Positions 1 to 28,646 are shown, numbered from the whole stretch's first letter. The stretch: 63,647 nucleotides of DNA, filler included, from Guillardia theta CCMP2712 (GCF_000315625.1; 5 parts of 5 records of this genome joined end to end with filler, not necessarily neighbours in it), one strand, 5' to 3'. Translations and numbers: made by a program. Notes: generated by a model not told the origin, from the letters alone.

Positions 1-200
1 GGTAAGAGCACGACGTGCTCTCTATAAACTGCGTCCTGCTTAGGTCATGAGCCACCAGCCAGAGGATAGCAGCGACCCACGTCGAGAAGAGGCTGCCTGA
101 TCCAAGATCCGTGAGGAGGCGTCGGGATGGGGCGGCTAACCCCTCGTAGCGACAGCCTGCCTAGTGAAGCTGCGACAGCACTCGACGAAGGGTATCCACA

Positions 201-643
201 CCTCGACAAGGGGCGACCTGCCTCGGGAAGGGGCGGCCTGCCTCGGGAAGGGGCGGCCTGCCTCGGGAAGGGGCGGCCTGCCTCGGGAAGGGGCGGCCTG
301 CCTCGGGAAGGGGCGGCCTGCCTCGGGAAGGGGCGGCCTCTGCCTCGGGAAGGGGCGGCCTGCCTCGGGAAGGGCCTGCCTCGGGAAGGGGCGGCCTGCC
401 TCGGGAAGGGGCGGCCTGCCTCGGGCCCGGGAAGGGGCGGCCTGCCTCGGGAAGGGGCGGCCTGCCTCGGGAAGGGGCGGCCTGCCTCGGGAAGGGGCGG
501 CCTGCCTCGGGAAGGGGCGGCCTGCCTCGGGAAGGGGCGGCCTGCCTCGGGAAGGGGCGGCCTGCCTCGGGAAGGGGCGGCCTGCCTCGGGAAGGGGCGG
601 CCTGCCTCGGGAAGGGGCGGCCTGCCTCGGGAAGGGGCGGCCT
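201..643. repeat. 20-bp minisatellite (CCTCGGGAAGGGGCGGCCTG)n, about 21 copies, at the 5' end of a minus-strand telomeric element whose body runs off the window
   Basis: Direct tandem repeat; the same unit recurs about 3 times at 6388-6447 at the 5' end of element B, each time next to a telomeric tract. Confidence 0.95.
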
Positions 644-665
644 CCTAAACCCTAAACCCTAAACC
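644..665. repeat. Telomeric tract T1 (CCCTAAA)~3
   Basis: cctaaaccctaaaccctaaacc. Confidence 0.95.
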
Positions 666-956
666 AGGATAACGCGTGGAGATGAGGGAAGATGACGAAG
701 AAGAGGAAGACATGGGTATTGGCATGATCTCCGATACAGCAGGTTGCGAACATTTTCATCATACTGAAGAACCATACTTAGAAAGCTATTTGAAGTATAC
801 AAACCTCTTGCTTGCAGCTTCCTTGGCGCCCTGACGGCTTCCCCTACACCTGGCAAGGAGCCATGCTGCCGAAAATAACGGCGCCCTGCTGCCGAAAATA
901 ACGGCGCCCTGCTGCCGAAAATAACGGCGCCCTGCTGCCGAAAATAACGGCGCCCT
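666..956 (-). mobile_element. Fragment of A-type telomeric element: 5' end only, with 4 copies of a 23-bp repeat and an inverted 40-bp piece of the ORF 3' region
   Basis: 716-870 nearly identical to 3354-3510; (GCTGCCGAAAATAACGGCGCCCT)4 at 865-956; 676-715 is the exact reverse complement of 1521-1560. Confidence 0.8.
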
Positions 957-974
957 CCTAAACCCTAAACCCTA
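957..974. repeat. Telomeric tract T2
   Basis: cctaaaccctaaacccta joined to (TTA)n. Confidence 0.95.
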
Positions 975-1154
975 TTATTATTATTATTATGTGAGTTTAT
1001 TAGAATGCTAGAATGTTGCTCGGCCTCGTTGTGGGCTTATGCAATTTGATCCTAGTCTAAAGAGGCGCTCGAGCACTGGGAGTACACGGCCTACAATGCG
1101 AACCCTGCTTCTGAGGCGTCTTTCTACTCTCTACTTCTGCTGTCTTCTCTTGGC

Positions 1155-1440
1155 TTCCTCAGCCTCAGTCAGGAGAGTTGCCTCTCCTCACCTTGGCCTT
1201 CGGTCACCACCTACTCTACCTCCATTCAGCTTCCTCAGCCTCAGTCAGAAGAGTTGCCTCTCCTCACCTTGGCCTTCGGTCGCCACCTACTCTACCTCCA
1301 TTCAGCTTCCTCAGCCTCAGTCAGAAGAGTTGCCTCTCCTCACCTTGGCCTTCGGTCGCCACATACTCCTCCATTCAGCTTCCTCAGCCTCAGTCAGGAG
1401 AGTTGCCTCTCCTCACCTTGGCCTTCGGTCGCCTCCTACC
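1155..1440. repeat. ~76-bp tandem repeat (about 3.7 copies) in the 3' UTR of copy A
   Basis: Units start at 1155, 1231, 1307, 1380; a single homologous copy lies in the B UTR near 3750-3815. Confidence 0.9.
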
Positions 1441-1464
1441 TTCTCTCCTTACCTTGAGCTCAGC

Positions 1465-3413
1465 TCAAGCTCGGTACGGGCTCGCCCCGTCTTCTTCCTC
1501 GCCCTCGCCTTGCTCTTCCTCCATGTCTTCCTCTTCTTCGTCATCTTCCCTCATCTCCACTCGCAGTCGGTCCTTCTTGTCCACCTTCAGCGAGCAGGCC
1601 AGCACATGCATCTCTGCGAATTTACTCAGTGCTATGAACAGGAAGCCTCTATGTCGTCGCTCTCCGCCTCCTGCTCAAGCTCAGCAGCTGCCGTTGCCCG
1701 TGGCGAGAACGCGCTGCCCCTCCTTGCCTTCTTGCTCTCTCCTTGCACGCGCCGCGGCGAGTCCAGCGCTTGCTCTGCAGCCACTTCCCCAGCTTCTCCT
1801 TGAGAACGTTGCGCCCAACTCCCTGCTCCTCTGGCATCTTCGCCCACTCTCCCAGCGACATGAACTCCAGGCTCCCCGGAGAGTAGAACGTGTCGTGGAG
1901 GTTGCCAACGGCCTTGTCCAGGACCAGCTTGATCGGCTCGCTCGTCCCTGCCTCGTTCAAAGAAGCTGCATCTTCGATGACTGCTGACAGCTCGCTGACG
2001 AGCTGCATGTCCTCTTGGCTTGACGGAGATGCTGCCTCCATTGTGATCCTCTCCAGGTCTGTAAACTCCAGCCACTCTCCCTCGCTCTCCTCCTGTCGCT
2101 GCGCTGCGTCGCTGGTGCCCCGCTGACCAGCCGCCTCAGGCTCCTTGTCGAAGCCGACTGCTTCGAGCTTGGTTGCTGCGCCTTCGAGATAGAAGGGCAG
2201 CTCCTTCATCATGCGTCGAGCATCCTCCGTGGAGCCGAGGAGGATGCATAGCTTGGACCCGTTCCAGGACTTGGTGTTCAAATCCTCCTCCATGTCGATG
2301 CCTTCAACGTTGATCTCGAGCCTGTTAGCGATCTCCAACAGGACTCTCTTGACTCTTGCGATAGACGTGTTGCCGCCGTTGCACAGCCCCTCCATCTCCT
2401 TCCTCGTGAAGCGACCAGATGCCGCCGTCGACTTGATGATGATCTTGATCTCCTTGCCGTCCTTGCCGCCTGCCTTCTTCTGCATCCTTGATGCCTTCTT
2501 CAACTTATTTCTGGACACAAAGCGATCAGCTGTCAACTCGACTGCGAGCGCCTCTCTGATCTTCGGGTCCTCGCTGAACAGAGTCAGGTGTATTCCCTCC
2601 ATCGCTTTGCTCTCTCGGAAAGCTCGAAATGCTGTATCGTTCGCCTCTGGGCAGCTCGAGGAGACGATCCACTTCACCTCCCTCTGTCTCCAGATGACGT
2701 TGGCCCCTACAGCGATGAAGCCTTTCTGACCTAAGCCTTTGTGGACTTGCTATCCTGGCGCCCCAGCGACCAGCATGCCTGCCAGCGGCTGGAGTTGGAC
2801 CGCTGCAAGGGACTGGCGCAGCAGCTGATAGCGATAGACGGCAGCTATCTCAGCCGTTGTCATGCCGCCCAAGGTTAGCAGGTGAGTCAGCTCTGCCAAG
2901 CTGCCCCCTTTGCCCCAGGGTCCTCTCTTGGCTCGAATCTTGAAAGATCGATCGTGCACGATGCTCACATGTACAGCTGTGAACTTGCGACCATCGATCG
3001 CGAAGTCCTCTCTTCCCTGCCAGAGCTTCTCCGCTTGTGCATTGCGGAGGAAGGAAACAGTCACCGGGATCTCCTCAGCACTCGCTATCTCGGGTCTATA
3101 CGGAGCCTTCCACATGATTGCTTTACTCTCTTGCACTGAGTCTACGATCAGTCCGATCTCTTCAAATTTCTTCTTCAGCTTTTCTTCATGGTTGACATAC
3201 ACCGAGGAAAACCACTCTCTGGATGCGTCACTCCATCCAGTCATCGCTTCTTGTAGATAGGCTATCCTGCTGTTCGGATACCGCTTCGCGAAGCTCTTCA
3301 CCCTCTCGACGTTTAGGGTTTAGGGTTTAGGCATCCACAAGTCCGCTCTGCGTGTATTGGCATGATCTCCGATACAGCAGGTTGCGAACATTTTCATCAT
3401 ACTGAAGAACCAT
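1465..3413 (-). pseudogene. Disrupted ORF1-like protein of element A, with putative RRM-like domains and an acidic C-terminus
   Basis: ORF pieces 2750-3301 and 1649-2677 plus shifted frames align to the B protein (KAIMWKAPYRPEIA, RAKRGPWGKGGSLAEL, GGNTSI, RITMEAASPS, LHDTF.SPG); in-frame TAG at 2750, frameshifts, inverted telomere insert at 3311. Confidence 0.75.
3311..3331. repeat. Inverted telomeric tract T3 (TTTAGGG)~3 inside ORF A
   Basis: gtttagggtttagggtttagg replaces about 24 bp present in copy B near 6192-6215. Confidence 0.9.
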
Positions 3414-3545
3414 ACTTAGAAAGCTATTTGAAGTATACAAACCTCTCGCTTGCAGCTTCCTTGGCGCCCTGGCGGCTTCCCCTACACCTGACGAGGAGCC
3501 ATGCTGCCGAAAATAACGGCGCCTCTGCCGAAAATAACGGCGCCT

Positions 3546-3573
3546 CTAAACCCTAAACCCTAAACCCTAAACC
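3546..3573. repeat. Telomeric tract T4 (CCCTAAA)~4
   Basis: Direct sequence. Confidence 0.95.
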
Positions 3574-3592
3574 AGGAAGGGGCCCGGTCCTA

Positions 3593-6448
3593 GTAGTAGT
3601 AGTTGAGTTTATTAGAATGCTAGGTAGGTTGCATGGCTTGTTATCACCTTGCTCTATTCTAGTCTAACAGGGATCTCGTGACCTGGCAGTTCGGCCCGAC
3701 TTGGCTGGCCCTTATGGCAGCCGTGCTTCTGCTCTGCTCCCTCCTCTGATATACTTCAGTGGTCTTCCCCGGCCTCAGCCAGTGGAGTTTCCTCCGCCGG
3801 CCTTGGCCTGGGTCGTCCGTGCTTTCAACTTGTGTTGCTTCCTCGGCTCCGACACACCTTGGCGGTCTCGGCCGGCCTTCGGCCAATGAGTGAATGAGGG
3901 ATAAGGACAATCAGGAGATAAGGTGGTAGGTGGAATGCGTATGGGTCCCTGGGACTCACGTCCCTTCCCCCGGGCCTCGGTCCGGACCGGGCCCTAGAGC
4001 CCGGCCGGCCTCCGCCCGGCCTCCTCCTCCCGGCCCCCCTCCCCCCTCCCCCACCGGCTTACCTGCCCTTACCTTCGTTGCTTGCCCCATGTCCACCTCA
4101 TTTATTTCTTCCTCCTTCCCCCCTTGGGGCCCACAGCTCCGCTCCGCCTCTTGTCCACCTCTAAGACTTGACTCGAGCCTCAAGCGCGCGAGGGGCCTGC
4201 ACCGGCCTCCTCCTCCACGCCCTCGCCCTCCTCCGCCTCCATGTCGACTTCCTCCCTCATCATCAGCCGCAGCCGGTCTTGCTTGTCGACCTTGCCCGTG
4301 CAGCTCAACCCATGGTGCTCAGCAAATTTACTGATCGCAAGAAACAAGAGGCTTACAGATCGACTCTCGATGTCATCGCTCTCAGCCTCCTGCTCGAGCG
4401 CATCAGTCGCTGCTGCCCTTGGAGAGAAGGCGCTGCCCCTCCTCGCTGCCTTGTTCCCTTGCACCCGTGTCCAGCGCTGCTCGCCGAGGTACGCTCTGAG
4501 CTTTTCTTTCATCATGTTTCGCTTCGATCCCAGCGTCGGCGTGGCTGCCCAAGCTCCGAGCGTCATGAACTCCACGTTGCCCGGCGAGCAGAAGGTGTCA
4601 TGCAGCTTGCCAACACTCTTGTCTAGCTCCAGCGAGATCGGCTTGCCAGCTAGCAGCTCCTCCTCTGATGTCTCCAAGAGCATCGTCGAGAGGTCGAGCA
4701 AGACCTGTTGATCGACTGGCCCTGACGGCGACGCTGCTTCCATAGTAATCCTGTCGATGTCGCTGAGCTCCAGCCATCCAGCGCCTTGCTGCTGCCCTTG
4801 GGGCTCTTGGGCTTGCTCCTCGCTGCTCGGGCTCCTCTCCTCCTCATGCTGAGGGTTGAGCTTAAAACCCATAGCTTCCAGCTTGACTTCCAGGATCCCT
4901 TCCAAGTAGAAGGGCATGTCTTCCATCAAGCGTCGAGCCTCTGCCTTGGTCGCCAGGGAGAGAGCTATCAGGCTCCCATCCCAGCTGAGCGTGTCACGAT
5001 CCTCCTCGGCCTCGACGCTGACCAGCTTGAGGTTCATTCTTCTTGCTAACTCCAACATGGCTCGCTTGACTCTCGTGATCGATGTGTTACCTCCTCCGCA
5101 CAGCGCTTCCATCTCCTTCCTCGAGAAGCGGCCTGTGCTCATGCTTGACCTCGACTTGATCTGTACTCTAAAGCTGCTGTGCCTAGCTTGGTCCCTGTCG
5201 CGAAGTACCTTCCTCTGCTTAGCGATCTTTCCCCTCGGCACGAAGGTGTCGGCTGTGAGCTCGACTGCAAACGTCTCTCTGAGCTTGGGCCGTCGTCGCT
5301 GATGAGAGTGAGATGCACCCCCTCCATCGCCTCGCTCTCTCTGAACGAGGCCAAGGTCTGCTCGCAGCTTGCCGTCGAAGGCGAGCTGAGCACCCACTCT
5401 AGCTCTTTTTGCTGGAGAGTGCCCGTACTTGCCCCAACAGCGACATACGTCTTCGGGCTCGGCCCCTTGCGACCTCTCTGCCCAGGACCCTGCAAGAGCA
5501 TGCCTGCAAGTGGTTGTACCTCTGCGGCTGCAAGAGATTGCGAGAGCAGCTGAAATCGATAAATCTGAGCGATCTCAGCCGTCGACATTCCTCCGAGAGC
5601 TAAGAGCTGCGATAGCTCGGCAAGGCTCCCTCCCTTGCCCCAAGGTCCTCGCTTGGCTCGAAGCTTGAACGACCGGTCTCTCCCTTCTATGCAGTATTCT
5701 TTCCTGCCTTCCCATAGCTCCATGGCTGCTTCATTCCGAAGGAAGGAGACGGTGACTGAGATGTCGTCTGCTCGTGCTATCTCAGGTCTGTAAGGTGCTT
5801 TCCACATGATGGCCTTGTCGACTCCATCGACTGAGTCTACCATGAGACCTAGCTCCATAAGCTTCGTTTTCAACTTTTCTTCTTGTCGAACATACATCGA
5901 GGAAATCCCTAGGAGAGTCATGGAGATGAAGGAGGTCCCCTCGGTGCCTTCGGTGCCGATGTATGTCTCGACATTCTGCTTCTTGGCCTCCTCCATCTGT
6001 TGAATAAACCATGCTCTCGACTCTGAGCTCCATTCACTCAGAGAGTCTTCAAACAGGTCGCGTCTCGCCTGCCGACATGTCGAGCGGATGGCTTCAGCGA
6101 TAGCGTCGGGAGTGCATCCCCCCTCAGCTCTGCAAGCCTGAGCTGTCCTACTACCAGGATACCGCTTCGCGAAGCTCTTCACCCTCTCGACGAGGTCGGC
6201 GGCCTCCTCGACGTGGCCTCCAGAGCGCTCGCCCTGCGTGTATTGGCATGATCTCCGATACAGCAGGTTGCGAACGCTCTCATCATACTGTAGTACCATG
6301 CTTAGAAGCTGTTTGAACTATACCAAGAACTTGCTCGCAGCTTCCTCCGGTCCCCTTGCGCTCTCCCTACGCGCCGCGGATGTGCATGCCTCGGGAAGGG
6401 GCGGCCTGCCTCGGGAAGGGGCGGCCTGCCTCGGGAAGGGGCGGCCTC
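3593..6448 (-). mobile_element. Telomere-associated ORF1-only non-LTR-like element, copy B
   Basis: 5' 20-bp repeats, ORF 6299-4180, 3' UTR, CTAGCATTCTAATAAACTCA plus (ACT)n tail; flanked by direct repeat CCCGGTCCTA (3583-3592 and 6449-6458). Confidence 0.75.
4180..6299 (-). pseudogene. ORF1-like protein of element B (~700 aa), one apparent frameshift near 5290
   Basis: ORFs 5139-6299 and 4180-5397 join by comparison with copy A (LFSEDPKIREAL vs LISDDG/PKLRETF); no RT or endonuclease motif seen. Confidence 0.7.
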
Positions 6449-6454
6449 CCCGGT

Positions 6455-6478
6455 CCTAAACCCTAAACCCTAAACCCT
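6455..6478. repeat. Telomeric tract T5
   Basis: cctaaaccctaaaccctaaaccct. Confidence 0.95.
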
Positions 6479-6951
6479 CCTCCACGCCCTCGCCCTCCTC
6501 AGCCTCCATGTCGACTTCCTCCTTCTGTAAGGTGCTTTCCACATGATAGCCTTGTCGTCTCTATCGACTGAGTCTACTACGAGTCCCAGCTCCATCACTG
6601 CTTCATTTAGAGTCATGGAGATGAAGGAGGTCCCCTCGGTGTCTTCGGTGCCAATGTATGTCTCGACATTCTGCTTCTTGGCCTCCTCCATCTGTTGCAT
6701 GAACCATGCTTTCGACTCTGGGCTCCATGCGCTCCGAGCCGGTCTTCAAACAGGTCTCGTCTCGCCTGCCGACATGTCGAGCGGATGGCTTCAGCGATAG
6801 CGTCGGGAGTGCATCCCCCCTCAGCTCTGCAAGCATGAGCTGTCCGACTATTCGGATACTACGCTTGGTGAAGTTCTTCACTCTCTCGACGAGGTCGGCG
6901 GGGCCGGGGCCTTGTCACCAAGCGACAAGGCCCCGTGCCTCTGACAAGGCC
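6479..6951 (-). mobile_element. Internally deleted B-like element fragment C
   Basis: 6476-6522 matches B 4211-4256, fused to sequence matching B ~5787-6201 with further deletions; hairpin at 6906-6934. Confidence 0.8.
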
Positions 6952-6978
6952 CCCTAAACCCTAAACCCTAAACCCTAA
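6952..6978. repeat. Innermost telomeric tract T6, boundary to unique gene-rich DNA
   Basis: (CCCTAAA)~4 followed by non-repetitive sequence. Confidence 0.95.
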
Positions 6979-7799
6979 GCTCAGTCACCGTTCGGGCCGC
7001 TCAGTCGGAGGCTCACAGTGACTGGTGGGATGTCGGACTCGAGTCCGGGAGTAGGTGGGAGTCCGAGGCCTGACGAGAAGGCGTCGGAGGGAGTCGGAGG
7101 GAGTCGGAGTCCTCCTCAGTATCGGGAGCAGTACTAAATATAGATTTCAATATATTTGTATAATGATTTACAAAACATTTACCACTTATACTGGTTACAG
7201 TTGTAAATATCATGACCCCTACGCATGTTCACAGTTTTGCCCTATATATGACCGGTACAGTAAGACAGATCTTGTAAAAAAATAAAAATGATTGGTACAA
7301 ACCAGGTACTCATGTCTTTAAAGTAGTTGTAAACTTGAATTTACCCAAAACATGAGAGTTTCCAAAAAGTGTTGATAATGACATTAATTGCCCATATGTG
7401 ACTCAGCCCTCACAACAGTCTACCCATCGGCAGCCTCAGGCTCCGCCGGGCCGAGTCTCCGAATGGCATCAGCTTTCACTCAGTCTACCCGGGCCATCTA
7501 CCTGTTGCCTAATTTCGTTTGATATCACCACACATCACTACAAATGAAGCAGTCCCGGGTGATAACTCTGAATCCCTGCTCTGACATTCGTCCTGTTCTT
7601 CACGATGCCGACTCATGTGCTTGTACTCGGGATGTGTAACCTTGTGTTGCTTTTTAACTTGAAAAATACAGACTAGAAACTGGCATGAATGAGGCTGAAA
7701 CATTGTTAGGGTCAGGTGTGGAGAAGACTCGAACCAAAGTTCAACAGTTTCTAGAGCTCTGCCCCTAAAGGTCTGAATGTATGGCTGTACATATCATTG

Positions 7800-9617
7800 A
7801 AAGTTGACTGATATTCTTCATGTCGTCGTTGCTTTGTACCTAAGTGATCAATAGTCAAATACAGGAAAACAGGACACGAAGGGGTAAGAACCAACCAAAC
7901 GAGTTCCTCGCTTCTTGAATTTGACGATCAACTTCATATTATGTACTATGCTCCGCCCTATACCTAAACAGACCTGAGGTTCACTGCTGCTTGGCTGAAG
8001 TCGACAACTTTTGGTAAATCCTTCTCCTTGGAAAGGCTCTGGTGGAACACTGATGAGATCGATCCATCTGCAGCACTTAAATTCATTCCTGCAAAGAGTT
8101 CAACCCAAATCATCTTACGGCAGCACAGTCTCTGCTTCATCTTCGTTCATCAGCAGGCTTGACCTTCCACTGACGCTATGTTTCCCTCTCTCACCAACGG
8201 CATGAGCATTGACTGGGAGGTTGTTCTTGCAGTTCATCTCAGGGCTTTCTTTTACCGAGGTTTCAGCTTGTATGGAATAGCTTCAACACAAATGTGAATA
8301 GCATGGTTTCCAACAAAGGCAAACCGCACATGGAAGCATATGGAGGGACCGACTTGATCCGAGAAGTGTCAGTTTCAACATCTCGAAGGTGACGCAACAC
8401 TTCGTTGACGGCTTGCAAGTCATTCTCTTCACATCTTTGAGCTTCCAAGATAAATGATTGCCTGGAATAACATGACACTATCAAAGCTCTGCTGACGTTA
8501 GAAGGAAACAGACTGAGAGAGCTGCAGGGCATCCGGTCTCGATTCAAAATCTTTCACAAGGCAGCTGCATCGAGAATGGAATGTTTTTCAGCAACGTCTA
8601 CTACAGCAACAGAAGATTCACCATTGGACGAATTCGTGCAAAGATTGTGGCCAGATATCACTGATCCCAGACGTCTGCAATATTGATTGCAGCACGGGTG
8701 GGTCGTTTTTACGGATGTATTCGATTGCTTCGATGGGATGCAGATGCGCCAATGGTGGCAAAGAGAGGACCATCTCGATGACGGTGATTCCGAGTGACCA
8801 GATGTCAGCCTTGTAGTCGTACTCTCCTCTCGAGCAGACTTCTGGAGACATCCAGTACCTACTCAGGACTCAGCAAACAGCTCACCTCAACTGAATGCTC
8901 ACGGTGTTCCAACAAAAGTGCAACGGCGATCATTTGGTACCTGCAACCTTGCTGATACTCCGAAGTCTGCAAGCTTGGCCTGAAAAGCACTAAGCATGCA
9001 ACAGCAGAAAGCATGAAAAATGTTGTCGTTTACTCACTCCCGATGAAGACAACAAGATGTTACTGGCCTTGATGTCTCTGAACTCATGTCAAAATCGCTC
9101 TCACATGCAAGAAATACACCTGTGTATCAATTGCTCTCCGTGTAGATAGCTCAATCCCATTAATGAGCAGCAGGTGATGCAACGAAGCTCTTGCAAGCCC
9201 AGCCCTCTTCCCAGCTTCTCCATCAGCTGCGACGCGAGTCAGCGGGGATTGACGAGCTTTCGCTTGAGTTACGTCAGAGACGGCACCACCATGACAAAAC
9301 TCTAACGCGATCCACAGCTGAGAGTCTTTCTCCCATGTGCCGTAGTAGGAAACAACATTCGGATGGCTGATAGTTTCAAGAATTCTCAGCTCCTTCTTGG
9401 CATCATCAGTTCCAACAACGACTTTGATCGCAACAGGCTCCCGTGAAGCAATACGTTCTGCATAGTAAACCTGAAGCAAGGCTATGCGTTAGACGACCAC
9501 AACCTCAAGCATCTCAATTTCGACAGCCTCTCTACAACTCACCATCCCTGCTGCTCCTTCTCCCAGCATCCTCTGCACCTCGAACAACGTCTCAGGGTCT
9601 TCGCGCCTTTCTGCCAT
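7800..9617 (-). CDS. STE20-family (MST/GCK-like) Ser/Thr kinase, multi-exon; 3' end approximate
   Basis: Exons encode LGEGAAGMVY, VAIK, ALEFCHGGAV, RDIKASNILL, KLADFGVSA, TFVGT, WMSPEV, DIWSLGITVIEM; GT-AG intron 9542-9471. Confidence 0.9.
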
Positions 9618-10029
9618 TCTCAAGGGGAGGAGAAACATCTTGGGTACCGGTGTAAATGAAATGGAATGGAGGGGTACAAAGGCTGAATGCAATGCAGGAT
9701 TCTTGTGAGCGATTAGCGGAAGAGGATGATTGAACCATGACAGGACGCCTAGAGCTGACCAGTGGCGATAGGAAGTGAGCAAGAACTTGAACGAAGATCG
9801 CTGGGAAATTGTGGGAAGAGGAAGAGTGGGAAGAGAGGAAGCCTGGGAGGAGTGGGTGTCGAAGCAAGGATTAGCTCATGGAATCTTGTCCTCTCTGAAC
9901 CGTTGACTTGCAATGTTTCTTCGGCTCAAACGAATCGGACTGCTGCTTGCATATGGTTTACAACTCTTGTTGACATCGCGCTTGTGTTCTGGGGAATACA
10001 GAAATCAGCCTCTCCGACTGAGAGGAGGC

Positions 10030-11340: not shown

Positions 11341-14176
11341 TTACCCGATCCGGAGCTGCTCCTCGATGCGTGAGGTGACCACCTCGCTGGGAGAGATTAT
11401 TGAGGTTGTCAGCACCTTTTGCCTCCTGCGATGCAGGGGTTTGCATTGCCCTCCTCGTCGCTGCCTGCTTCTCGATGAAAGAATCTGTGTTCCAAAGCTC
11501 AGCAGCGCTCGAAACATGTCCAAGTCATCACCTGAAACTTTGGCATTCGACTCATTCTTGGCCCGCAGGACCGTTGATTGATCCATCTCTTGAGCTCTAC
11601 GTCCTTTGGCAATATAGTGCCCATCTTCCATGTGATTGGCATTCAGCTCAGATATTTCAGTCTTCTTCGCATCCTCCTTTTCCCTCTTCTTTTCTCCATT
11701 CACAGCATTTCGAGGAGATCCTTTCTTGAACCTAGTGCGAGCACTTCGGATGGCGTGCAAGTCCATCTCAACAGCATCAAAGCGAGCATGCATCTTATGC
11801 ATGTCAGCGATCAGCCGCTTCAAAAGTTGATCCACTTGCGGGTCGTACTCCATGCTCGCATCAACTTTTCCATCTCGCGTAGAAGCAATTGAGTTCTCAT
11901 CATCCATTGGCCCGACGGGAACCTTTTCCAACCTCGCATGTTCCTCATCCTCCAGAAGCATTCCCTTAATGCCCAGGAATAAGCTTCTGATATTGTTTCT
12001 GTTCCAGTCTTCGTTCTCATCTTCCATGCAGGCGTTCAGCTGTCTCAGCTGGTGCCGTTTGAGCGCTTGCTTCATCAAAAGCATGAAGCCTTGGCGATTG
12101 AGGATACCGCCTTCATCGCAAAGACGTGGCCGCATGATGTAGTCGTCCCAAATCTGACGCGTCACTAGAATAGGAGGAATAAAGCCGATGTTCTTTAGCC
12201 CCATCCTAAATTCTGCAAATCCCATGCACCCATCCCCCACATTTGGAATTTCTCCTGTCTTCCAACGATTGAAATAGACCCTCAAGATTTCACTGTCTTC
12301 ACGGGCAACTTCTTGTGTGAACAGATCGTACTTCTTTTTGATGGTGGTGTAAAGAATCTTGTCATAAAGATTGTTGATTTTGGTCTCCAGATCATCCAAA
12401 TTCCTGAGGAAAACATAAAACATAAGGCTAAAACTACTCACCAACGTCAGAAACTTACTTGTACTTTGAAAGTTCTCTTGAGATCTTCTCGAAGGGGCAA
12501 GCTTCTATCTCCTCTGAAGCCAGACTCTTAGAGATTTCTGCTTCAGAGTTGCGTTGGTCGGCAGCCTTCGAGAACTCATCGAGTAGGACAGCAATCACCA
12601 CGTTCAGGAGTACCAGAGCAACTATTAAATGAAAGCTAACAAAGAAGATGGCAACCCCCGTATTCTGACCAGTCAGTGTGAAAAGACCTCTGGCTATGTC
12701 AGACCAATTGTCGCCTGTCATCACTTGGAACATGGTGAACATGCCAGTAAAAAAGTCTCCAAACTCTTCGGGTGCGTAGGAGCTGAAGAAGGTCACAGAC
12801 ATGATAGCATAGATTGCTGTCACCAAACACACCAGCGCAAATGCATTGATCATGGGAGGAATTGATGCAGTCAGCGCTATCATGATCTGGCGGAGTGAAG
12901 GAATCCTTTTGAACAACCGAAATACTCGAAAACATCGCATAAGCCGAAGAATATTAGCTCCCGGAAGATTAGTAAGGACCAAACTCAGCAACGACACGAG
13001 CACGACTCCGAAGTCGAACCAATTCCATCCATCGGAAACAAATTCTACAAACCACGTGGCAAATATATTGATGACAAGCTCCACCGTGAAAAATATGGTG
13101 AAAAGAAGATCGATCTGATCGAAAACATTAGCTAACTGAGTGTCTGGTGCAGCATTGAAGTGCGCTTCAAAAATGTTCAACAGAAAGTTACACATGATGA
13201 TCCCCGCAACAAAGACTTGACAGCGATCTCCCACATAGAACCAGCGGACCTTGCGCCTGAATGTATCAAGACGATTCATGTGGACAACAGGATATCCAAC
13301 GTAAGAAGTCATAACTCTTGTAATCGTCTCGGACCATCGCTCCATGGTGTCCCTGCAGTCCGTTCGGAACAGGTAGATCCTTCCACCATGATACGTGCCA
13401 AAAGCGGTACAAATGCCAAAATCAGCTGCTCCAAGCTCAACTTGCTTTGCTAGATCTATCTCATGCTCAAAAGCTCCTTCTTCTCTCCATGTCACAACAT
13501 TGGAACTTTCTAAACCAATGGAACTCTGGGTGGTGAATCAGAATCATAACAACCAACAAATTCAAAATAGTTACTTCAGCTCTAGTTTTGCAGACAACCA
13601 AGCCGATGATGTCGGTGAAGTTGATCCTGTCGATTTCACGAGTGTCTTTCGAGACTGAGTAACTAACAAACTCTCGTGTCACTGCGACCCATCTTGACTT
13701 ATACTCATCTCCCTCATGGCCACCACGTTTCCAGATCTGCCAAGATGCAGTGTCACAAAAGAATGAACGACTAACCCTAAAGAGGCACTCGCCTGCCCTT
13801 GAATCAACGAGGAAGATGTCGAGTCCGTCACCCACTCTTCCGGCTGTTCTGGCATTTTCACTTTCCACGCAGTCACAACATTCTGTATTGAATGTAATGC
13901 CTGTCGTGCGATCTTAGATGTGAGGGTTGTATCTTCTGGGATATTGCTGGGAAGTGCAGGCTCTTTCACTGAAGATACTTTCTTCAAAGGAAAAACGGTT
14001 GCTGAGTCAGCATCGACTCGTGATGCTCTTCGAGCATCATTGTAGCCATCTACATCGCCGTCGCTCTTGTTGTCATTCTCGGGTGTGATTTCGCAACTGA
14101 TACTACGTGGCGATGGCTGCTGAGCGATCTCGGGAGCACTGTCTCTTCTCATCTGGAATAGTTTGAGAAAATCCAT
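11341..14176 (-). CDS. Single-domain (6TM) voltage-gated cation channel (EukCat/BacNav-like) with N-terminal PH-like domain and C-terminal EF-hand-like pair
   Basis: S4 LRLMRCFRVFRLFKRI; WNWFDF; pore TMFQVMTGDNWSDIAR; S6 LLNVVIAVLLDEF; PH-like WKRGG..KSRWVAVT..YLFRTD...ERWSETI. Confidence 0.88.
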
Positions 14177-17374: not shown

Positions 17375-18755
17375 GGAGGAGCTCAGGCTGGAAGGAAGGT
17401 GTGGAGATGGAGTATGGGAAGACATCGAGGTATTATCGTGCACCGATGATGGATCATTTCAAGTCCGACAATCCTCTAGCCTGGAAGAAATTAGCATGGT
17501 AAGGGCCAGGCCAGCCGATTAAAGCTGAACCGTACTCAGGGTGCTGAGGAGATAAGGATGGTTGGCAATGGTCTATGCAGAGACTATATGCCGCAGAAAG
17601 ACGATATGCTTCTTTGCAATGACATGAGATCTTTGAGAATGGACGAGGCTTTACACCCGTGTACGTCGTGTGCATTTACAGTTCTCATGAGCGATTGACT
17701 GTTCACACAGCCTGCTGGAGTGAAGTTCGGGTTGTGGAGGTAGTCGACGATGATGAAGACAAGCAGGGTCCGAAACTGATCGTTGCGCTAAGTCAAAGAA
17801 ATGCAGACATCAATTCTGCGAGTCCAGATCCCCCAGTTTCCTCCAAGCTTCCCCTCTCATGCTTTAGAAAACTCGGTTCCGCCATCCCAGTCGAAGAGTT
17901 GAAAGGACTTTGCAGAAAGAGGAGCAGATGCAAAGAAAGTCAGGAAGGCTCGGAAGCTGACAATTCCAACCCGCGTAAGGGTACCAAGGCTACCACATTA
18001 TCCTGCGAGAAGAAGGATGAAGGCTGGATGCTTGAAGATGTCGGGCTCAGGCCGGTCTTCTCTACTCTAACCTGTACAATACTGCGATGTTGAAGTTTCT
18101 TACGTAGTTGCACCTCCGCTCTTGCTCCGAATCCCCGCCTTCCATAGAGGTAGACTGTTCCTTACCAATCCGGCAGAAACATCTGAATGTGAGTGTCTGG
18201 CAGTTGTTAAAGGGAATGAACGTCTACGTGCGCAATGAGAACGGTACCTGCAGAACTGGCACTCTCAAATTCAACCCAATCACCACACGGTGAGATTCTC
18301 TATGACCACATCTGTCGCACGATGACACTACGTGCAGTTGGATCATAGTAGAAGGCGACAACAGATTTAACCTCGCCACTTTTTGTGAGGAAGCCGGCGG
18401 CGCTTCTGTAAAGCTTCCAAGAGAACGTCTGCTCTGTGCAGAGACGCATGAACCGATCATCCCCAAGGTGCGGGCAATCATGATTTGACGTCGTTTGATG
18501 AACCTCAGGTCGAAGGGTTCGCATTGCCGACAAGGCGATGGTTTCTCCATAACTTCCCGAACTATGTATTGACCCTTCTTGTCTCCTTCTTGCTTTCTTT
18601 CTTCTTCTCGTTTCCTCTTGTCGTTTTGGTGATTGTTTGCGCAGCGAGAAATGGGAGGAGATATCTCGCAGCCCGGAAACAAACGTATGGTAGGAAGGTA
18701 ACCTGAGGTGATTTGAAGCTTTATGAGCTTGTTGAGCTTCGACGCGGTAGGAATC
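17375..18755 (+). CDS. Hypothetical multi-exon protein, apparently ending at the junction with the dynein fragment
   Basis: Chain of short ORFs with ~50-bp GT-AG introns; no family recognised. Confidence 0.4.
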
Positions 18756-21296
18756 ATCCGCCACTACCTCCTCCAACACCGGGTATCGAACAACTTGCTG
18801 CCCGAATATGGTCTGAAAGGACTGATTCTGCTTTGCCGTCTTTTCAATCGCATTCGCTTGCTCCTTGAGTTCTTCGCAGACGTGAAGTACAGGATCAATG
18901 AATTCTACATCCTCAAGAAGCTGAGGGTCCTGCGATATCTGTCGCAGCTTCTCGATTTCATGGTGAAATAATTTGATGTCTTCTTCAAGCTGAGTACTCC
19001 ACCTGGCCATCTCATCGTCTTGAGTGCTCTCGAAGATATCCAACATATTCTTCATTTGATTGTATTCTGGCACCAGCATCTGGAACGCAGCCCTGTCCAT
19101 GCTATTCACCTCCACCGAGTTTTCATCCATCAAGCTGTAGTGATCCTGAAGCTCTTTAAACTCGGCGTCGATCTCATCCTTTCGTTCGTTGCATTGCGAA
19201 ACAAAATCTAACACAGATACGAAACTGGCCACATTGGTTGGTTTCCTTGAAAGATTGTTGTTGGCTATGTTGACTTCGTCCAGCAGCCTTCTTTGCTTTG
19301 CAACTGTCAGTTGTGGAAGTATGTCTTCCAATTTTTCGAGACACGAGGCGGGCGAAGGAGAAAGAAGGGTTTTCAACTTTTTGGAATTGACTTGCATAAT
19401 TCCACAATCCATTTCATCTGGCAAATTGCGAATATTATCAGCTTGGCTGTGGTACAAATCAAATTTCTCCTTAAAGTTTTGAAGAACAAATTCACCCTCT
19501 TCTGCTTTTTGTCTCAATTCTTCTTCGTCGAGTTGCTCATTTTCGACTACCATTGTCTGATATGGTTCAAAAATACTCACGTAATCATTACAGGCATCAA
19601 ATGCATTTGCAACTGCCACTTTGATGCGAGCAAGTAATTTTCTATATTCTTCATCATTGGTTACAATCTCAGAAACCGTGGAGCTTTCACTGGTCTCTGT
19701 TTCTGAGTCGAAAAGCTCTGTATATTGTTCCAGATCCTCATTATTCAAAAGCCTCACACTATTGGATCCGGAAACAGTGTCAACGAATCCCCCCACGATG
19801 CTATCTAGTTCATTTTCAAAATCCGCAGCTCCTGGGACGAAAGTAAGGTCTCCGAGAATCAATGATATCTCTGTCAAGAAAACAGCTTTGCGCTTTTTCT
19901 GACTATCTTCTAATTGGTCTTTGACATTCGGCTCAATCTGGGCAAGCAGTTCTGAGGTAGATTCGACCACCATAGTGTGCAAAGTGTTGAAAATCACGTA
20001 GTCACAAAGCCTAAGAAAATAATAGAGTCTCCTCTGGACGACTCGTTTCGATGCCATCACAGTATAACGGAAATTTTCCGCACGGGGAGAAATCTTATCG
20101 CCTTTCTCTTGCTCATTTTGTTGTTGACCTTGAGTTTTGACTGAATTAGCACCAAACAATCCTTCTTCTAGAGAGTCAAGCGTCGCAATGCACGAACTCT
20201 TCGCAACATCGATGGCTTGCAACCAAAACTCTTCGAGATGATTCAATACAACATTTCTTTGTGCTTGTTGTGCTTCAAAAAAGTGAACAATAGTGTACAA
20301 AGTGTCTTTTTGAAAACTGTATAACTTCACCTTCTGCAAATCCATGCACATGTCGCGAATCCTGAGCAGAGCTTCTCTGAAGGTTGGATTCAAAAAGAAC
20401 AAATTCTTCGTCAACGCTTTGGCGCTGCTTCTCATTTTCCCATATCGGACTGAGTCTCTCCACACCTTGTAAGATTTCCAGATCCGATATCTTTTGAATA
20501 CGGGGATTTTAAGGATAGCATTGAATAGGAAATGCTCTCGTTTCCACTGTTCCAACTCAGTAAACTCAGGCTTGCCGTTAACAAAATGAGTGACACCAAA
20601 GGAACTCAGAGTAAAGAAGTCGCTTTTAGGAATCTGATTATGAGGTACTATTTCAAGATGATAAGGGTTCAACGGAGTTATCTCATCGATTTGGAATGAC
20701 TTCAGATACACAAACTCCGTACTGTCAGGATTTTGCCGTAAGCGTTGTAAAACGACTAATGGATTTTTGTTGTCAGGCAGGCAATACAAAACAGACTGTT
20801 CGTTGGCCTTCTCTTCATCTCCCATCTGTTCATGGTCTTCGTTTTTGTTCTCCAGTTCGATTTCTTTACCATCGTCAACATGCCCATGAGCATGAAGATT
20901 TGTTTGGTCATGAGCATGAGCAGATAGGATTTTTGAAGTTTCATGTTTTGTATCTCCATTGAAAATAGACCCATCTTCACCTTGATGCTTTGGTTGATCA
21001 CTTTTCAATTCGTCAGGCAGCAAAGCTTGATGAATTTTCTTTGGCTTCAACTTTGCACTCTCTGGCTTACTCGAATGCACGCTTTTCGAAGGCTTTCTTT
21101 GAGGTGTCAAAACTTTCTTGCAATGTAAAACGTCTTTGATCGGATTGGCTGTGTGCTTTGTGCTCAGCAATAACCCTGACGAGATATTGATGCCCTCTAA
21201 CTTACTGAAATCAGCGTCCTCCACTTCTTGATCAAAATATCTGCGTTAATCGTAAGTTTTTCATGCAAATACTTTCACATTTCACCTGTTCTCCAT
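18755..21296 (-). pseudogene. Axonemal dynein heavy chain N-terminal tail only (DNAH6-like), no motor domain
   Basis: NPYHLEIV, FFTLSSFGVTHF, EFTELEQWKREHFLFNAILKIPVFKRYRIWKSYKVWR resemble the inner-arm DHC tail; similarity ends near 18755; likely start ATG 21296 with intron 21285-21241. Confidence 0.75.
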
Positions 21297-21651
21297 CTAA
21301 TGAATCTCTGTTGCTAGTGCCAACTGTTATGTGTTCTTTTCACTTCCAGAGCTTCCATGGTCCTGGTTCGATCCCTTTCGGTAAGTTCCGCGCCATGTCT
21401 GCCGTTGCCTCCAACTGGCCCTGTAGTAACAGATGCCTTTGCCACCACACCGGTACCTATCCCCAGATATTTGCCTTCGATTACGGGGTGAAGGAGGGTA
21501 GTAGAGCCCTACCCTCACAGCTTACCTGCAGCCTACCCTACCCTCATCAGACCCCCATGGTCGGTGCGGGGATGGGGTACAAATTTTCCAGGGGCAAAAA
21601 ATCCGGCAAAACATCTTTAATTTCCCCGCCCATCCGTTGGAGGCAACGGCA

Positions 21652-23060
21652 ATGCTAGAACGACTGGACGTGTATGCGGCGCTGGAGCTGAGCAGAGGAT
21701 GCTCGGAAGAGGATGTGAGGAGGACTTACAGGAAGCTTGCGCTTAAGACCCATCCGGATAAGGAGAAGGGGACTGAGAGTGAGTTCCTAGCTATTGGGTT
21801 TGCTTATCGGGTGCTCAGTGATCGCAAGTTGAGAGCACTTTATGACAGAAGGGATATGGATTTTTCAGCATCAAAGGCAGACCTGATAGAAAGCTTTGAC
21901 ATCAATGAAGCTCTGAGGATCTTCGACCAGTTCTTTGGAACCTCCAACCCTTTCGCTGCAGTCTCTGAAGGAGTTGAGTCGCTCTTTGATTCGGAAGCGG
22001 ATAAACGCAAACCCAAGCCCAGTCCGAATAAAGAAATCGACTTGTCCTGCACATTAGAAGAAATCTATAACTCAGCCTCAAAGAGCATTGATGTTCCAAA
22101 ACAGCGGATAAACTCCGAAGGGCAGGTTTTGTTCCTAACCCCTGATTCCTTTCAGCTCAAACTTCCTTCAGGTGGAGAATTACACCAGAACGTACAGAAT
22201 CCAAGCGGAGCCGAGCTGGATCTCAGGGACGAAGCTCAAGTACGACAAGGAACCCGATGACCTCACAGGGGACGTGATATTTACGGTCCAGGTAACCTAA
22301 ATCCTCTCCCTCTTTCGTCGATATGAACGCTGTTGATATAGATCGAGCCTCACCCGGTCTTTGAGATAGAGAGATTCTCTCTAAAGATGAAGCAGGAAGT
22401 GTCTCTGTGTGATTCATTAACAGGGTTTGTTATACCCATAAACATGCCGGATGGAAGAAAGCTCAATGGTTTGTTGTCTGCTCCTGGATCTGTGCAAGTC
22501 CTGAAATAGGGTTGCTCCAGTTTCTGTGGAAGAGGTCATCGATCCAAGCTATAGCAAGGTATCTCTCTTACAGACTAATCTGTTCATGTCAAGTTGGATT
22601 AAGTTGAATTCTCTTGCAGATCATTAAGGGCGAAGGTCTTCTAGACAAGGAGAGAAATACAAGAGGAGATCTTATCATCACCTTTCACATTAATTTCCCT
22701 AAAAAGCTCTTGTAAGTGACCTGGAGATCTCTTTGTTATATGTTGTAATCTGGCAGATGTCTTCAATGATATTTGATTTTAGATTATTCTCTCACTGATA
22801 TTGTTTTCCAACAGACCAATTCAAAGAAATCTTCTGCATTTAGCGCTACGGTAGTTGTCTGTCAACACTTTTTTCTTCATCGATGTTGATGGTTGAACAG
22901 TCTTCCTCAAGACCTCACGAACGCAAATAACATTCAGGTAAGCTGAGGATAGACAAATCTTGGGCTTCATTGAAAGTTACGTCAGACAAGACTCCTTGAA
23001 ACAGCAATGAGATTGCCTCCAAATTTGGCGGAGACAGAGAGACAGAAGGTGCGGTATGAT
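21652..23060 (+). CDS. Type II HSP40/DnaJ (DNAJB13/RSP16-like), multi-exon; 3' end approximate
   Basis: J domain with HPD (YRKLALKTHPDK); C-terminal domain LSCTLEEIY, GDVIF, VSLCDSLTG, IKGEGL, RGDLIITFHINFP. Confidence 0.88.
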
Positions 23061-23389
23061 TGTGAATGTCTGCGCGCGCGCTGCTGTCATAGCTGGCGGA
23101 AGGTGGTAAGGGAGGGATGACGCTGCGATGGCTAGGTTGAAGCTGTAAATAATCTCCTCGTCAAGCGCGACGATCAGCCTCCGCCTGAGTGACAGGCGCA
23201 GTCTACTACTTAGTGCTGGTCTAGTGCTGGTCAATCGATGGCTTCCGCCCTCCTCCCTCCGAACTGATTTACTAAGTGAACTCAAAGCTTAAATCGCATA
23301 GTCCCCTAGTCGCCTCCCTGGGCCCTCGATACCACGACTTTGTCCTCGTCCGCAAGACTTAGTCCCAAACCCCGTCAACGTCCAGGTGG

Positions 23390-23677
23390 AGGGAGAGGAG
23401 CGAGACAAAGAGAGAGAAGAAGAGCGGGGGAAGGGAGAGAGAGAAGAAGAGAGAGAAGAAGAGCGGGGGGAGGGAGGGAGGGAGGGAGGGAAGGGGGAGA
23501 GAGAGAGCGAGAGAGTGAGAAGGGGGATAGGGAAGGGAGAGAGGGGGGAATGCAAGGGAGAGAGAGAGGGAAGGAGAGAGGGAAGTAAGGGAGAGGGAGA
23601 GAGGGAGAGAGGGAGAGAGGCAGGGGAGAGAGAGAGGAAGAGTGGGAAGGAGGAGAGGGAGAGGGGAGAGCAGGAGT
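23390..23677. repeat. GA-rich low-complexity tract
   Basis: Nearly pure purine run. Confidence 0.9.
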
Positions 23678-27856: not shown

Positions 27857-28646
27857 AACGTCTACACGTCCGAATGGATCGCGAGGAAGGAGGAAAGAGT
27901 TCACAACAGCAGGATCAGAAGCAGTAGTTGTTGGTGGAGGTTTAGGAAGGACTAAACAAACTATTCTCCTGATGGGAAGAGAAAGCAGGAAGGGGTGGTG
28001 AAGGGATTGGAGACGGGGACGGGGAGAGAGGGAGCGAGAGAGGGAGAGAAGGAGAGAAGGAGAGAGAGGGAGAGAAGGAGAGAGTGAGAGTGTGTGAGAG
28101 AGGGGGGGGCGGGGGGGCGAGGGAGCGAGGGAGCGGAGGGGAGCGGAGAGGAGGAGGGGGGGGGGGGGAGGAAAGGGGAGGGGAGGGGAGGGGAGGGGAG
28201 GGGAGGGGAGGGGAGGGGAGGGGAGNNNNNNNNNNNNNNNNNNNNNNNNNNNNNNNNNNNNNNNNNNNNTTAATTAATTAANNNNNNNNNNNNNNNNNNN
28301 NNNNNNNNNNNNNNNNNNNNNNNNNGAGTCTTGGCTGGGACCGGGCGGGGGACAATTCGTCGCCGTTACTGGGGGGATCCTTGTTAGTTTCTCTTCAGGC
28401 TCAGACGGCTCAAACTCTTTCAGTTCGCTGCTGCCATGATGGCTGAATAGAGTCAGCGGCCCCTCCCCTCAGGCCTCATTCAACTTGTTTCTCTATGTAT
28501 TGAGTAGCGCAGTCACGTTAAGAGCTCAAAAGATGACTTCCAACCTTGCAGGCTCGGGGCACTACTGTCCCTGACCGCTCGTCCTCAAAGTCCTGCAGAG
28601 CTCTGCTGCTCTCCTAGTCTCGCTGCCTTGTCGCTCGGTCCGACGG

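Follow-up and report, generated by a model that had tools for sequence, protein, structure and literature searches.

ORF1-only elements interleaved with telomere repeats in Guillardia theta and their probable Dualen-type LINE partners

Telomere-targeting long interspersed elements (LINEs) arose several times, as SART/TRAS in insects, HeT-A/TART in Drosophila, in Giardia, as Zepp in Chlorella and as MoTeR in Magnaporthe, and every instance bears on how the work of end maintenance is divided or exchanged between retroelements and telomerase. Here we describe an array of retro-like elements in the cryptophyte Guillardia theta CCMP2712, at positions 1–6978 of a 63,647-nt stretch of DNA joined from five parts of the genome (filler included; hereafter the window). 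The array holds copies of two families, A and B, whose single open reading frame (ORF) is homologous to LINE ORF1. The part of the window under study is C64:17187-45467, and the genome searched comprises 87.1 Mb in 669 contigs. We consider it probable that A and B are HeT-A-like, ORF1-only members, mobilised in trans, of a SART-like, endonuclease-driven, telomere-repeat-specific LINE superfamily that operates beside telomerase.

The Bombyx mori elements SART1 and TRAS1 (R1 clade) occupy a fixed position in telomere repeats, with the sense strand contiguous with the G-rich strand; the sense of SART1 is the TTAGG strand and its first nick falls in CCT^AA (PMC7265360). The G. theta family shares the fixed position and the strand and, like SART1, appears to need an element endonuclease and coexists with telomere repeats. 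Its first nick, which we would place at CCCTA^AA or one base off, would also lie on the C-rich strand at a T/A step. It differs from SART1 and TRAS1 in its LINE clade, in its trinucleotide tails instead of poly(A), in an ORF1 without CCHC knuckles, in the restriction-like endonuclease (RLE) and peptidase predicted in its ORF2, and in its long-lived ORF1-only families. Membership of the R1 clade was rejected, as the marks of that clade (a poly(A) tail, CCHC knuckles in ORF1, and an apurinic/apyrimidinic-type endonuclease, APE, as sole endonuclease) are not those found here; the family is SART-like in working only.

Drosophila HeT-A resembles A and B in encoding protein 1 only, in being under selection, in lying at chromosome ends only and in standing beside relatives that bear a reverse transcriptase (RT), TART and TAHRE, whose RT it apparently uses in trans. 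However, HeT-A joins free chromosome ends, 3' end proximal, and stands in for telomerase. The G. theta elements are oriented the other way round and target the telomerase repeat itself, in a genome that has a TERT gene. Magnaporthe MoTeR1 and MoTeR2 (CRE clade) likewise insert in telomere repeats, form interleaved arrays and pair an autonomous with a non-autonomous element through shared termini; their host kingdom and clade are different, they carry an RLE only, and MoTeR2 has no conserved ORF1. What defines the Dualen/RandI clade is that a single ORF encodes both an APE and an RLE (PMC4640811, PMC9977147). Cryptophyte members with the order C48, APE, RT, CCHC, RLE have been reconstructed from transcriptome data, among them a Tara Oceans ORF of 2543 aa (Lescot et al. 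2016, PMC5029228).

On the + strand, window 1-6978 contains five short CCCTAAA tracts, against a chance expectation of 0 (shuffled sequence gives none). They lie at 643-664 (~3 repeats), 956-974 (ending ...CCCTA directly before the tail of A), 3544-3573 ((CCCTAAA)x4), 6454-6477 (capping the eroded 3' side of the fragment at 6478-6951) and 6952-6979, the innermost, with unique, lower-GC host sequence from 6979. An earlier note, made from the window sequence alone, had described five co-oriented element copies or fragments set apart by 2.5–4 telomere repeats, and mapping of the tracts and of the five pieces between them bore this out. The element DNA between the tracts is GC-rich, at 54–64% GC, and falls to ~45% after 6979. 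The same note took the region for a chromosome-end array. The array is real, but the window does not hold its end, nor is the window array the end of the contig: 17 kb more of the same array type lies distal of the window on C64. This distal part comprises an A-type copy whose 715-aa frame is open (C64:143-2287), an autonomous element of 10.3 kb (C64:2466-12757) oriented as the window copies are, and further fragments plus one B copy, each bounded by telomere tracts. The terminal array therefore spans at least 24 kb, and window 1-6978 is its inner portion.

Copy A (piece 3, 975-3545, minus strand) is a degenerate ORF1-only element, and copy B (piece 4, 3590-6453, minus strand) an ORF1-only element of a second subfamily. 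Both read, on the minus strand, telomere tract, 5' minisatellite, short 5' untranslated region (UTR), coding region, 3' UTR, the motif CTAGCATTCTAATAAACTCA, trinucleotide tail and telomere tract, and the unit length of 2.6–2.9 kb is fully accounted for by this layout with a single ~715-aa ORF and no RT or endonuclease. The layout, including an identical 3' motif with (TAA)n and (CTA)n tails, was as the earlier note had it. The + strand form of the motif, TGAGTTTATTAGAATGCTAG, is at 992-1011 in A and 3604-3623 in B, preceded on that strand by (TTA)n and (GTA)n, respectively. In A, the (TAA)n tail (975-990, minus strand) is fused directly to the telomere repeat. The direct fusion had been noticed before; in B, a 16-nt filler, AGGAAGGGGCCCGGTC, lies at 3574-3589 between the telomere tract and the (CTA)n tail (3590-3603, minus strand), while most other copies join the tail directly to CCCTA.

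The remaining features of A, all on the minus strand, are 76-bp repeats in the 3' UTR (1153-1439), ORF pieces at 1649-2677 and 2750-3301, a 5' UTR at 3333-3503 and a minisatellite of 2.1 copies of a 21-mer at 3504-3547 (the family unit is a 21-23-mer). Two internal deletions lie at ~3208 and ~3258, and A is 97.6% identical to the open-frame (715 aa) copy at C64:143-2287. At 3310-3332 of A, a 19-nt inverted TTTAGGG tract replaces ~21 nt of coding sequence, a junction that is unique in the genome and that may stem from a template switch or micro-conversion; the tract runs opposite to every other one and had escaped the earlier note. B, also on the minus strand, has a 3' UTR from the motif to ~4180, ORF pieces at 4180-5397 and 5139-6299 that are split by a 2-nt excess near 5289, a 5' UTR at 6300-6386 and three copies of its 20-mer unit at 6387-6447; it is 98% identical to a B copy on C39 with an open 716-aa frame. 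Thus, the single ORF of ~700 aa that had been read in the window copies is split in both, and intact ORFs of 715–717 aa are found only in sister copies, several of which retain them. Introns were rejected as the cause of the split ORFs, because sister copies have uninterrupted 715–717 aa frames and contigs from the sequencing runs described below lack the 2 extra bases near 5289. The two proteins share the peptide block KAIMWKAPYRPEIA and are 58% identical overall; no significant Pfam domain was found in the four window ORF pieces or in intact ORF1s.

The 16-nt core of the 3' motif has 154 exact copies genome-wide, against 0 for a reversed control. About 90% of these 154 3' motifs abut telomere repeats, and do so in a fixed phase, ...CCCTA|tail, so that the genome-wide association with TTTAGGG proposed earlier holds. 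The heptamer AACCCTA is found 4–34 nt distal of the motif in 76 of 82 reverse-strand copies and in 61 of 70 forward-strand copies, the latter hand-counted among the sites listed. Across 233 kb of loci, the order telomere tract ...CCCTA, tail, motif is near-invariant, with tails of 0 to ~10 units, and full-length 5' ends join as ...CCT|CCTAAACCC. The 3' end points toward the nearer contig end for ~92 of the first 100 motifs listed (contig ends being confirmed only where loci were cut by them). The elements therefore insert within telomere repeats at a fixed phase, as do those of the SART/TRAS functional class.

A partner for A and B, defined beforehand by the earlier note as an element with the same 3' end plus an RT and an endonuclease, is present on the same contig. 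This LINE of 10.3 kb (C64:2466-12757) lies ~10 kb distal of the window on C64, in the same orientation as A and B, and partners occur on many other contig ends too. From 5' to 3', it consists of a telomere-abutting 5' end, ORF1, one stop codon, ORF2, a ~550-nt 3' UTR, the motif CTAGCATTCTAATAAA, a (CTA)n tail and telomere repeats. ORF1 is a 716-aa open frame (701 aa from the first ATG) and ORF2 has 2502 aa. Pfam identifies an APE-type endonuclease in ORF2 (Exo_endo_phos, aa 450-632, 31.7 bits against a cut-off of 24.5) and an RT (RVT_1, aa 1167-1420, E 4e-35) whose best sequence matches in the PDB are R2 (E 1e-22) and L1 ORF2p (E 2e-18). A word-based protein search with the APE-RT region gave 3 matches only. 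The N-terminus has a weak match to Peptidase_C48 (17.0 bits against a cut-off of 20.7), in which the H, D and NCG residues are visible, and a precomputed C48 match exists for the ORF2 of a second lineage, described below. Pfam gave no RNase H match in ORF2 aa 1700-2502 with the threshold relaxed to E 10. Four tandem peptide repeats of ~20 aa, TSTTKLEEEVQPNAIQRLM, lie at ORF2 aa 300-400 (C64 ~9340-9640; locus L033), after the peptidase-like domain and before the APE domain.

The C-terminal 190 residues of ORF2 are its most conserved part between lineages (55–59% identity). They hold a CCHC knuckle (C-x2-C-x8-H-x4-C), followed by IPDG ... E.ARTSE ... KEEKY, and this arrangement is conserved in four lineages, including one in Rhodomonas, where the homologue of the C-terminus lies in a Rhodomonas salina transcript. 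An AlphaFold2 (AF2) model of the region shows an alpha-beta-beta-beta-alpha-beta nuclease core, and its best match is the C-terminal CCHC and restriction-like endonuclease region of R2 (Foldseek E 5e-6; VIA-align Z 11.6–13.0 over 190–210 residues); PD-(D/E)xK cap-snatching nucleases come next, at Z ~10. Thus, ORF2 carries a predicted R2-type RLE, in a model of moderate confidence. By domain set and order, the partner would best be filed in the cryptophyte Dualen group. The described members (RandI; Dualen-1_GCr, Dualen-5_CCu and the Tara Oceans ORF) have the domain set and order predicted here, an ORF2 of ~2500 aa and a cryptophyte host (PMC5029228). Dualen-1_GCr also has a SET domain, which was not seen in the G. 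theta partner. These members were reconstructed from transcriptomes, so that nothing was reported on where they insert, on partners with ORF1 only or on telomere specificity (PMC5029228).

The A and B proteins are homologous to the partner ORF1 (29–34% identity, blastp E 1e-59 to 4e-78), and partners and passengers end in the same 3' terminal motif, CTAGCATTCTAATAAA, plus a trinucleotide tail. Because A and B share these termini and the ORF1 homology and have no RT of their own, they would be ORF1-only passengers mobilised in trans, and the earlier proposal of a non-autonomous, telomere-specific LINE-like family gains support from the partner, the common 3' motif and tail, and the ORF1 homology. 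A second autonomous lineage (lineage II) has an ORF1 36–38% identical to that of the C64 partner's lineage (lineage I), with ~45% identity in the C-terminal third of ORF2. It is present on many G. theta contig ends and complete on a 10.7 kb metagenome contig (L047), in the order 3' end of one element, three telomere repeats, full lineage II element, (AAT)n tail and at least 15 telomere repeats. Metagenome scans with a protein pattern, and with the 3' motif plus telomere repeats, gave no contig beyond this one.

Tail type is family-specific: (CTA)n is always found in B and lineage I, and (TAA)n in A and lineage II (for instance, L047:10590-10640 and L034:2441-2500). The tails hint at two specific pairs of passenger and driver, B going with lineage I and A with lineage II. 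Over their final ~130 nt, the 3' UTRs of B and lineage I are 73% identical. A block, GGGCC...CT.CCA.G...CCC.TTTAGAC, which includes a telomere-like TTTAG, recurs ~60–90 nt from the 3' end in A, B and lineages I and II, and a consensus RNA structure computed for the shared 3' UTR end (5 pairs, -2.3 kcal/mol) was unconvincing. A structural model of ORF1 (mean predicted local distance difference test score, pLDDT, of 70) has as its best folds the multi-RRM proteins Prp24, PUF60 and hnRNPA1, at a probability of 0.99–1.0 and with TM-scores that are low from domain arrangement; such predicted RRM-like folds are in line with the RNA-binding role of LINE ORF1. All 59 matches of an exhaustive ORF1 profile search aligned best to these ORF1 families, and the search returned no outside homologue or named domain. 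The ten match clusters that were looked up came from Guillardia theta, from transcriptomes of Hanusia phi, or from metagenome/Logan contigs.

Could A and B instead be members of an ordinary family of host genes, duplicated in subtelomeres, or a product of repeat misassembly? The ORF has no Pfam domain, the G. theta annotation labels members as hypothetical proteins, and the assembly is old, with a gap adjoining the window. However, in two lineages a homologue of the ORF immediately precedes an ORF2 with APE and RT, the units have a defined terminus on either side and need no introns, and the same layout recurs on dozens of contigs and on an independent metagenome contig. We therefore give this explanation hardly any weight, the least of those considered.

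What is the mechanism of insertion? We propose that A and B, as two ORF1-only families, are copied in trans by the Dualen-type autonomous partners. Within a telomere tract, an element endonuclease would nick the C-rich strand at CCCTA^AA or a neighbouring position, and the freed 3' OH would prime reverse transcription from the RNA tail, perhaps assisted by pairing with a read-through UAGGG. Read 5' to 3', the C-rich strand leads inwards from the chromosome end, so that extension would write the antisense strand in that direction, tail complement first. A nick on this strand would give the + strand order that is seen, CCCTA, (TTA/GTA)n and antisense motif, and priming there would place the sense strand on the G strand with the 3' end distal. 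This is the orientation observed, SART-like and opposite to that of HeT-A, as the earlier note had argued. The fixed 5' junction would call for a defined second cut on the G strand, which may fall after ...TTTAGG. Both cuts are consistent with a 4-nt stagger (TAGG), a value made ambiguous by the 7-mer periodicity and by tails that end in TA. New copies might enter the terminal tract or internal tracts, and distal 3' ends would erode and be healed by telomerase, leaving interleaved short tracts.

Alternatively, the RNA could be reverse transcribed straight from the 3' OH of the chromosome end, without an endonuclease, as in HeT-A/TART or in Athena-like elements. Such end attachment would suit elements that are terminal and ORF1-only, like HeT-A, and short telomere tracts between units, as in Athena arrays. 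Priming from the G overhang, however, would put the antisense on the G strand and the 3' end proximal, and the opposite is observed in ~92% of the motifs listed; in addition, the partner carries two endonucleases (one of them, the RLE, predicted) and an RT that is LINE/R2-like and not like that of Penelope-like elements (PLEs). The Athena/Penelope-like alternative entertained in the earlier note is thus unsupported, the orientation being wrong for G-overhang priming and the RT of LINE type with endonucleases, and we hold end attachment to be very improbable.

Truncated copies are of two kinds. Copies with a perfect 3' end and a truncated 5' end lie between two telomere tracts (for example, a ~320-nt A copy at L024 40-520), and many B matches include the 3' end but do not reach the 5' end. 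Such 5' truncations are the usual mark of incomplete target-primed reverse transcription. Distal (3') truncations at random points, capped directly by telomere repeats, are also common (window 6478, L024 ~470 and many others), the pattern that chromosome-end erosion followed by telomerase healing would leave. The only match to Telomerase_RBD (TERT) in the genome is at C21:562211-562372 (minus strand), with one in-frame TAG in the matched stretch that is probably an intron boundary. The presence of this TERT RBD gene shows that telomerase coexists with telomeric LINEs in G. theta.

The A-distal/B-proximal order of the window recurs on at least 7 other contigs (C321, C160, C152, C66, C172, C39 and C115). 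This recurrence is what one would expect if the units, of retroelement origin, formed an array like that of the yeast Y' elements, in which ORF1-only units do not retrotranspose and now spread by recombination, through break-induced replication or unequal exchange via internal tracts. Yeast Y' elements are also subtelomeric tandem units with short internal telomere tracts, such tracts are ideal for invasion, and the window copies are defective. Y' elements, however, encode a helicase, spread by recombination and lack an RT partner, a fixed junction at a 3' tail and a series of 5' truncations, whereas the G. theta units have private 5' truncations flanked by telomere tracts and family-specific templated tails of variable length with a single junction phase. 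Moreover, the telomere tracts within the recurring A-B pairs differ in length, from 25 to 131 bp, purifying selection is strong and many frames are open, transcripts occur in two genera, and endonuclease-bearing partners with long open frames exist. We thus regard spread by recombination without retrotransposition as unlikely, and the one competing account that deserves some weight. Under trans-mobilisation, the recurrent A-B order may reflect successive bursts, with older copies more proximal, or the exchange of array blocks between ends; both probably occur.

To measure selection, we computed the ratio of nonsynonymous to synonymous substitution rates (dN/dS) by the Nei-Gojobori method, by which comparisons with the partner ORF1 are saturated. 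Between A and B, dN/dS is 0.24–0.27 at a dS of ~1.2. Among seven open-frame B copies it is 0.16–0.25, reaching 0.37 only in the closest pair, which has very few differences. As judged from these codon comparisons, purifying selection on the A/B ORF, which the earlier note had read from its peptide blocks, is confirmed, at dN/dS values of 0.16–0.27. The MMETSP transcriptomes of Hanusia phi and G. theta, which are poly(A)-based, contain complete family ORFs. Contigs of four sequencing runs, taken on a guess to be RNA, cover both A and B with at least 95% identity; this is not proof of expression, their depth being uninterpretable, and the MMETSP entries are the stronger evidence for transcription.

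Structure, junction phases, family relations, selection and domain content are direct observations in this work, and several points weigh against the explanation that we prefer, a telomere-specific LINE superfamily with trans-mobilised ORF1-only members. Both window copies are dead, through frameshifts and deletions. We infer trans-mobilisation, present-day activity and which endonuclease cuts which strand, and the RNA nature of the four runs is a guess. A small number of motif copies sit well away from contig ends or face the opposite way, and, with a 7-mer repeat as target and tails that finish in TA, no target-site duplication can be resolved. Given that A is found distal to an adjacent B on at least 7 contigs, recombination between chromosome ends, and not independent insertion, may account for part of the spread. 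In the predicted domains of ORF2, the C48 match of lineage I is under the Pfam cut-off, and the RLE model, built from a 4-sequence alignment, has a low mean pLDDT of 58 (60–86 in the nuclease core).

In the literature searched, which did not include Repbase, we found no description of telomere targeting by Dualen elements or of telomeric retrotransposons in cryptophytes. The earlier note knew of no such family in cryptophytes; Dualen LINEs with the same domain set were already known there from transcriptomes (PMC5029228), but their genomic context and telomere targeting were undescribed. We see about an even chance that this is the first telomere-repeat-specific Dualen lineage and the first telomere-targeting retrotransposon system of a cryptophyte, with at least two autonomous lineages each paired by tail type with a selected ORF1-only family. 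If so, a HeT-A-like division of labour would have arisen independently in a telomerase-positive protist, and the elements, together with telomerase, would build and rebuild every chromosome end. LINE/Dualen elements are reported to be expanded in all cryptophytes except G. theta (PMC12747079), where they would be confined to chromosome ends.

Several uses follow. A clade with two endonucleases and fixed 5' and 3' junction phases makes it possible to ask which nuclease cuts which strand. The ORF1-only elements are under selection despite saturating divergence from the partner ORF1, which makes trans-mobilisation, and the analogy to HeT-A, testable in a culturable alga. The record of erosion and healing can serve to measure end dynamics, and the arrays explain why many G. 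theta scaffolds end in "hypothetical protein" genes.

The other three pieces of the window array, all on the minus strand, are fragments. Piece 1 (1-643) is a 5' part; the body of the element extends leftwards out of the window, and an N gap in C64 precedes the piece. It consists of 21.6 copies of the 20-mer minisatellite AAGGGGCGGCCTGCCTCGGG at 208-643 and of an unplaced 5' region variant at 1-207. Piece 2 (665-956) has no 3' end; it contains an A-type 5' UTR (716-931, 96% identical to that of an intact A copy) and 4.2 copies of a 23-mer (860-956), and an inverted 43-nt scrap of the A ORF C-terminus (673-715) adjoins the 5' UTR fragment. Piece 5 (6478-6951) is B-like, with its 3' end cut inside the ORF C-terminus (B position ~2228 of 2855), an internal deletion of ~1.56 kb and its own 5' repeat variant at 6902-6951.

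From a few kb inside the array boundary onward, the window carries ORFs with host-type domains, an Ion_trans/PKD-channel ORF at 12455-13495 (minus strand) and a DnaJ-domain ORF at 21637-22260 (plus strand). A 974-aa ORF at 18300-21224 (minus strand) gave a weak coiled-coil match and nothing else. Long purine-rich tracts of low complexity (GA or GGGAGGGA-like) lie on the + strand at window 23389-23670 and 28024-28225.

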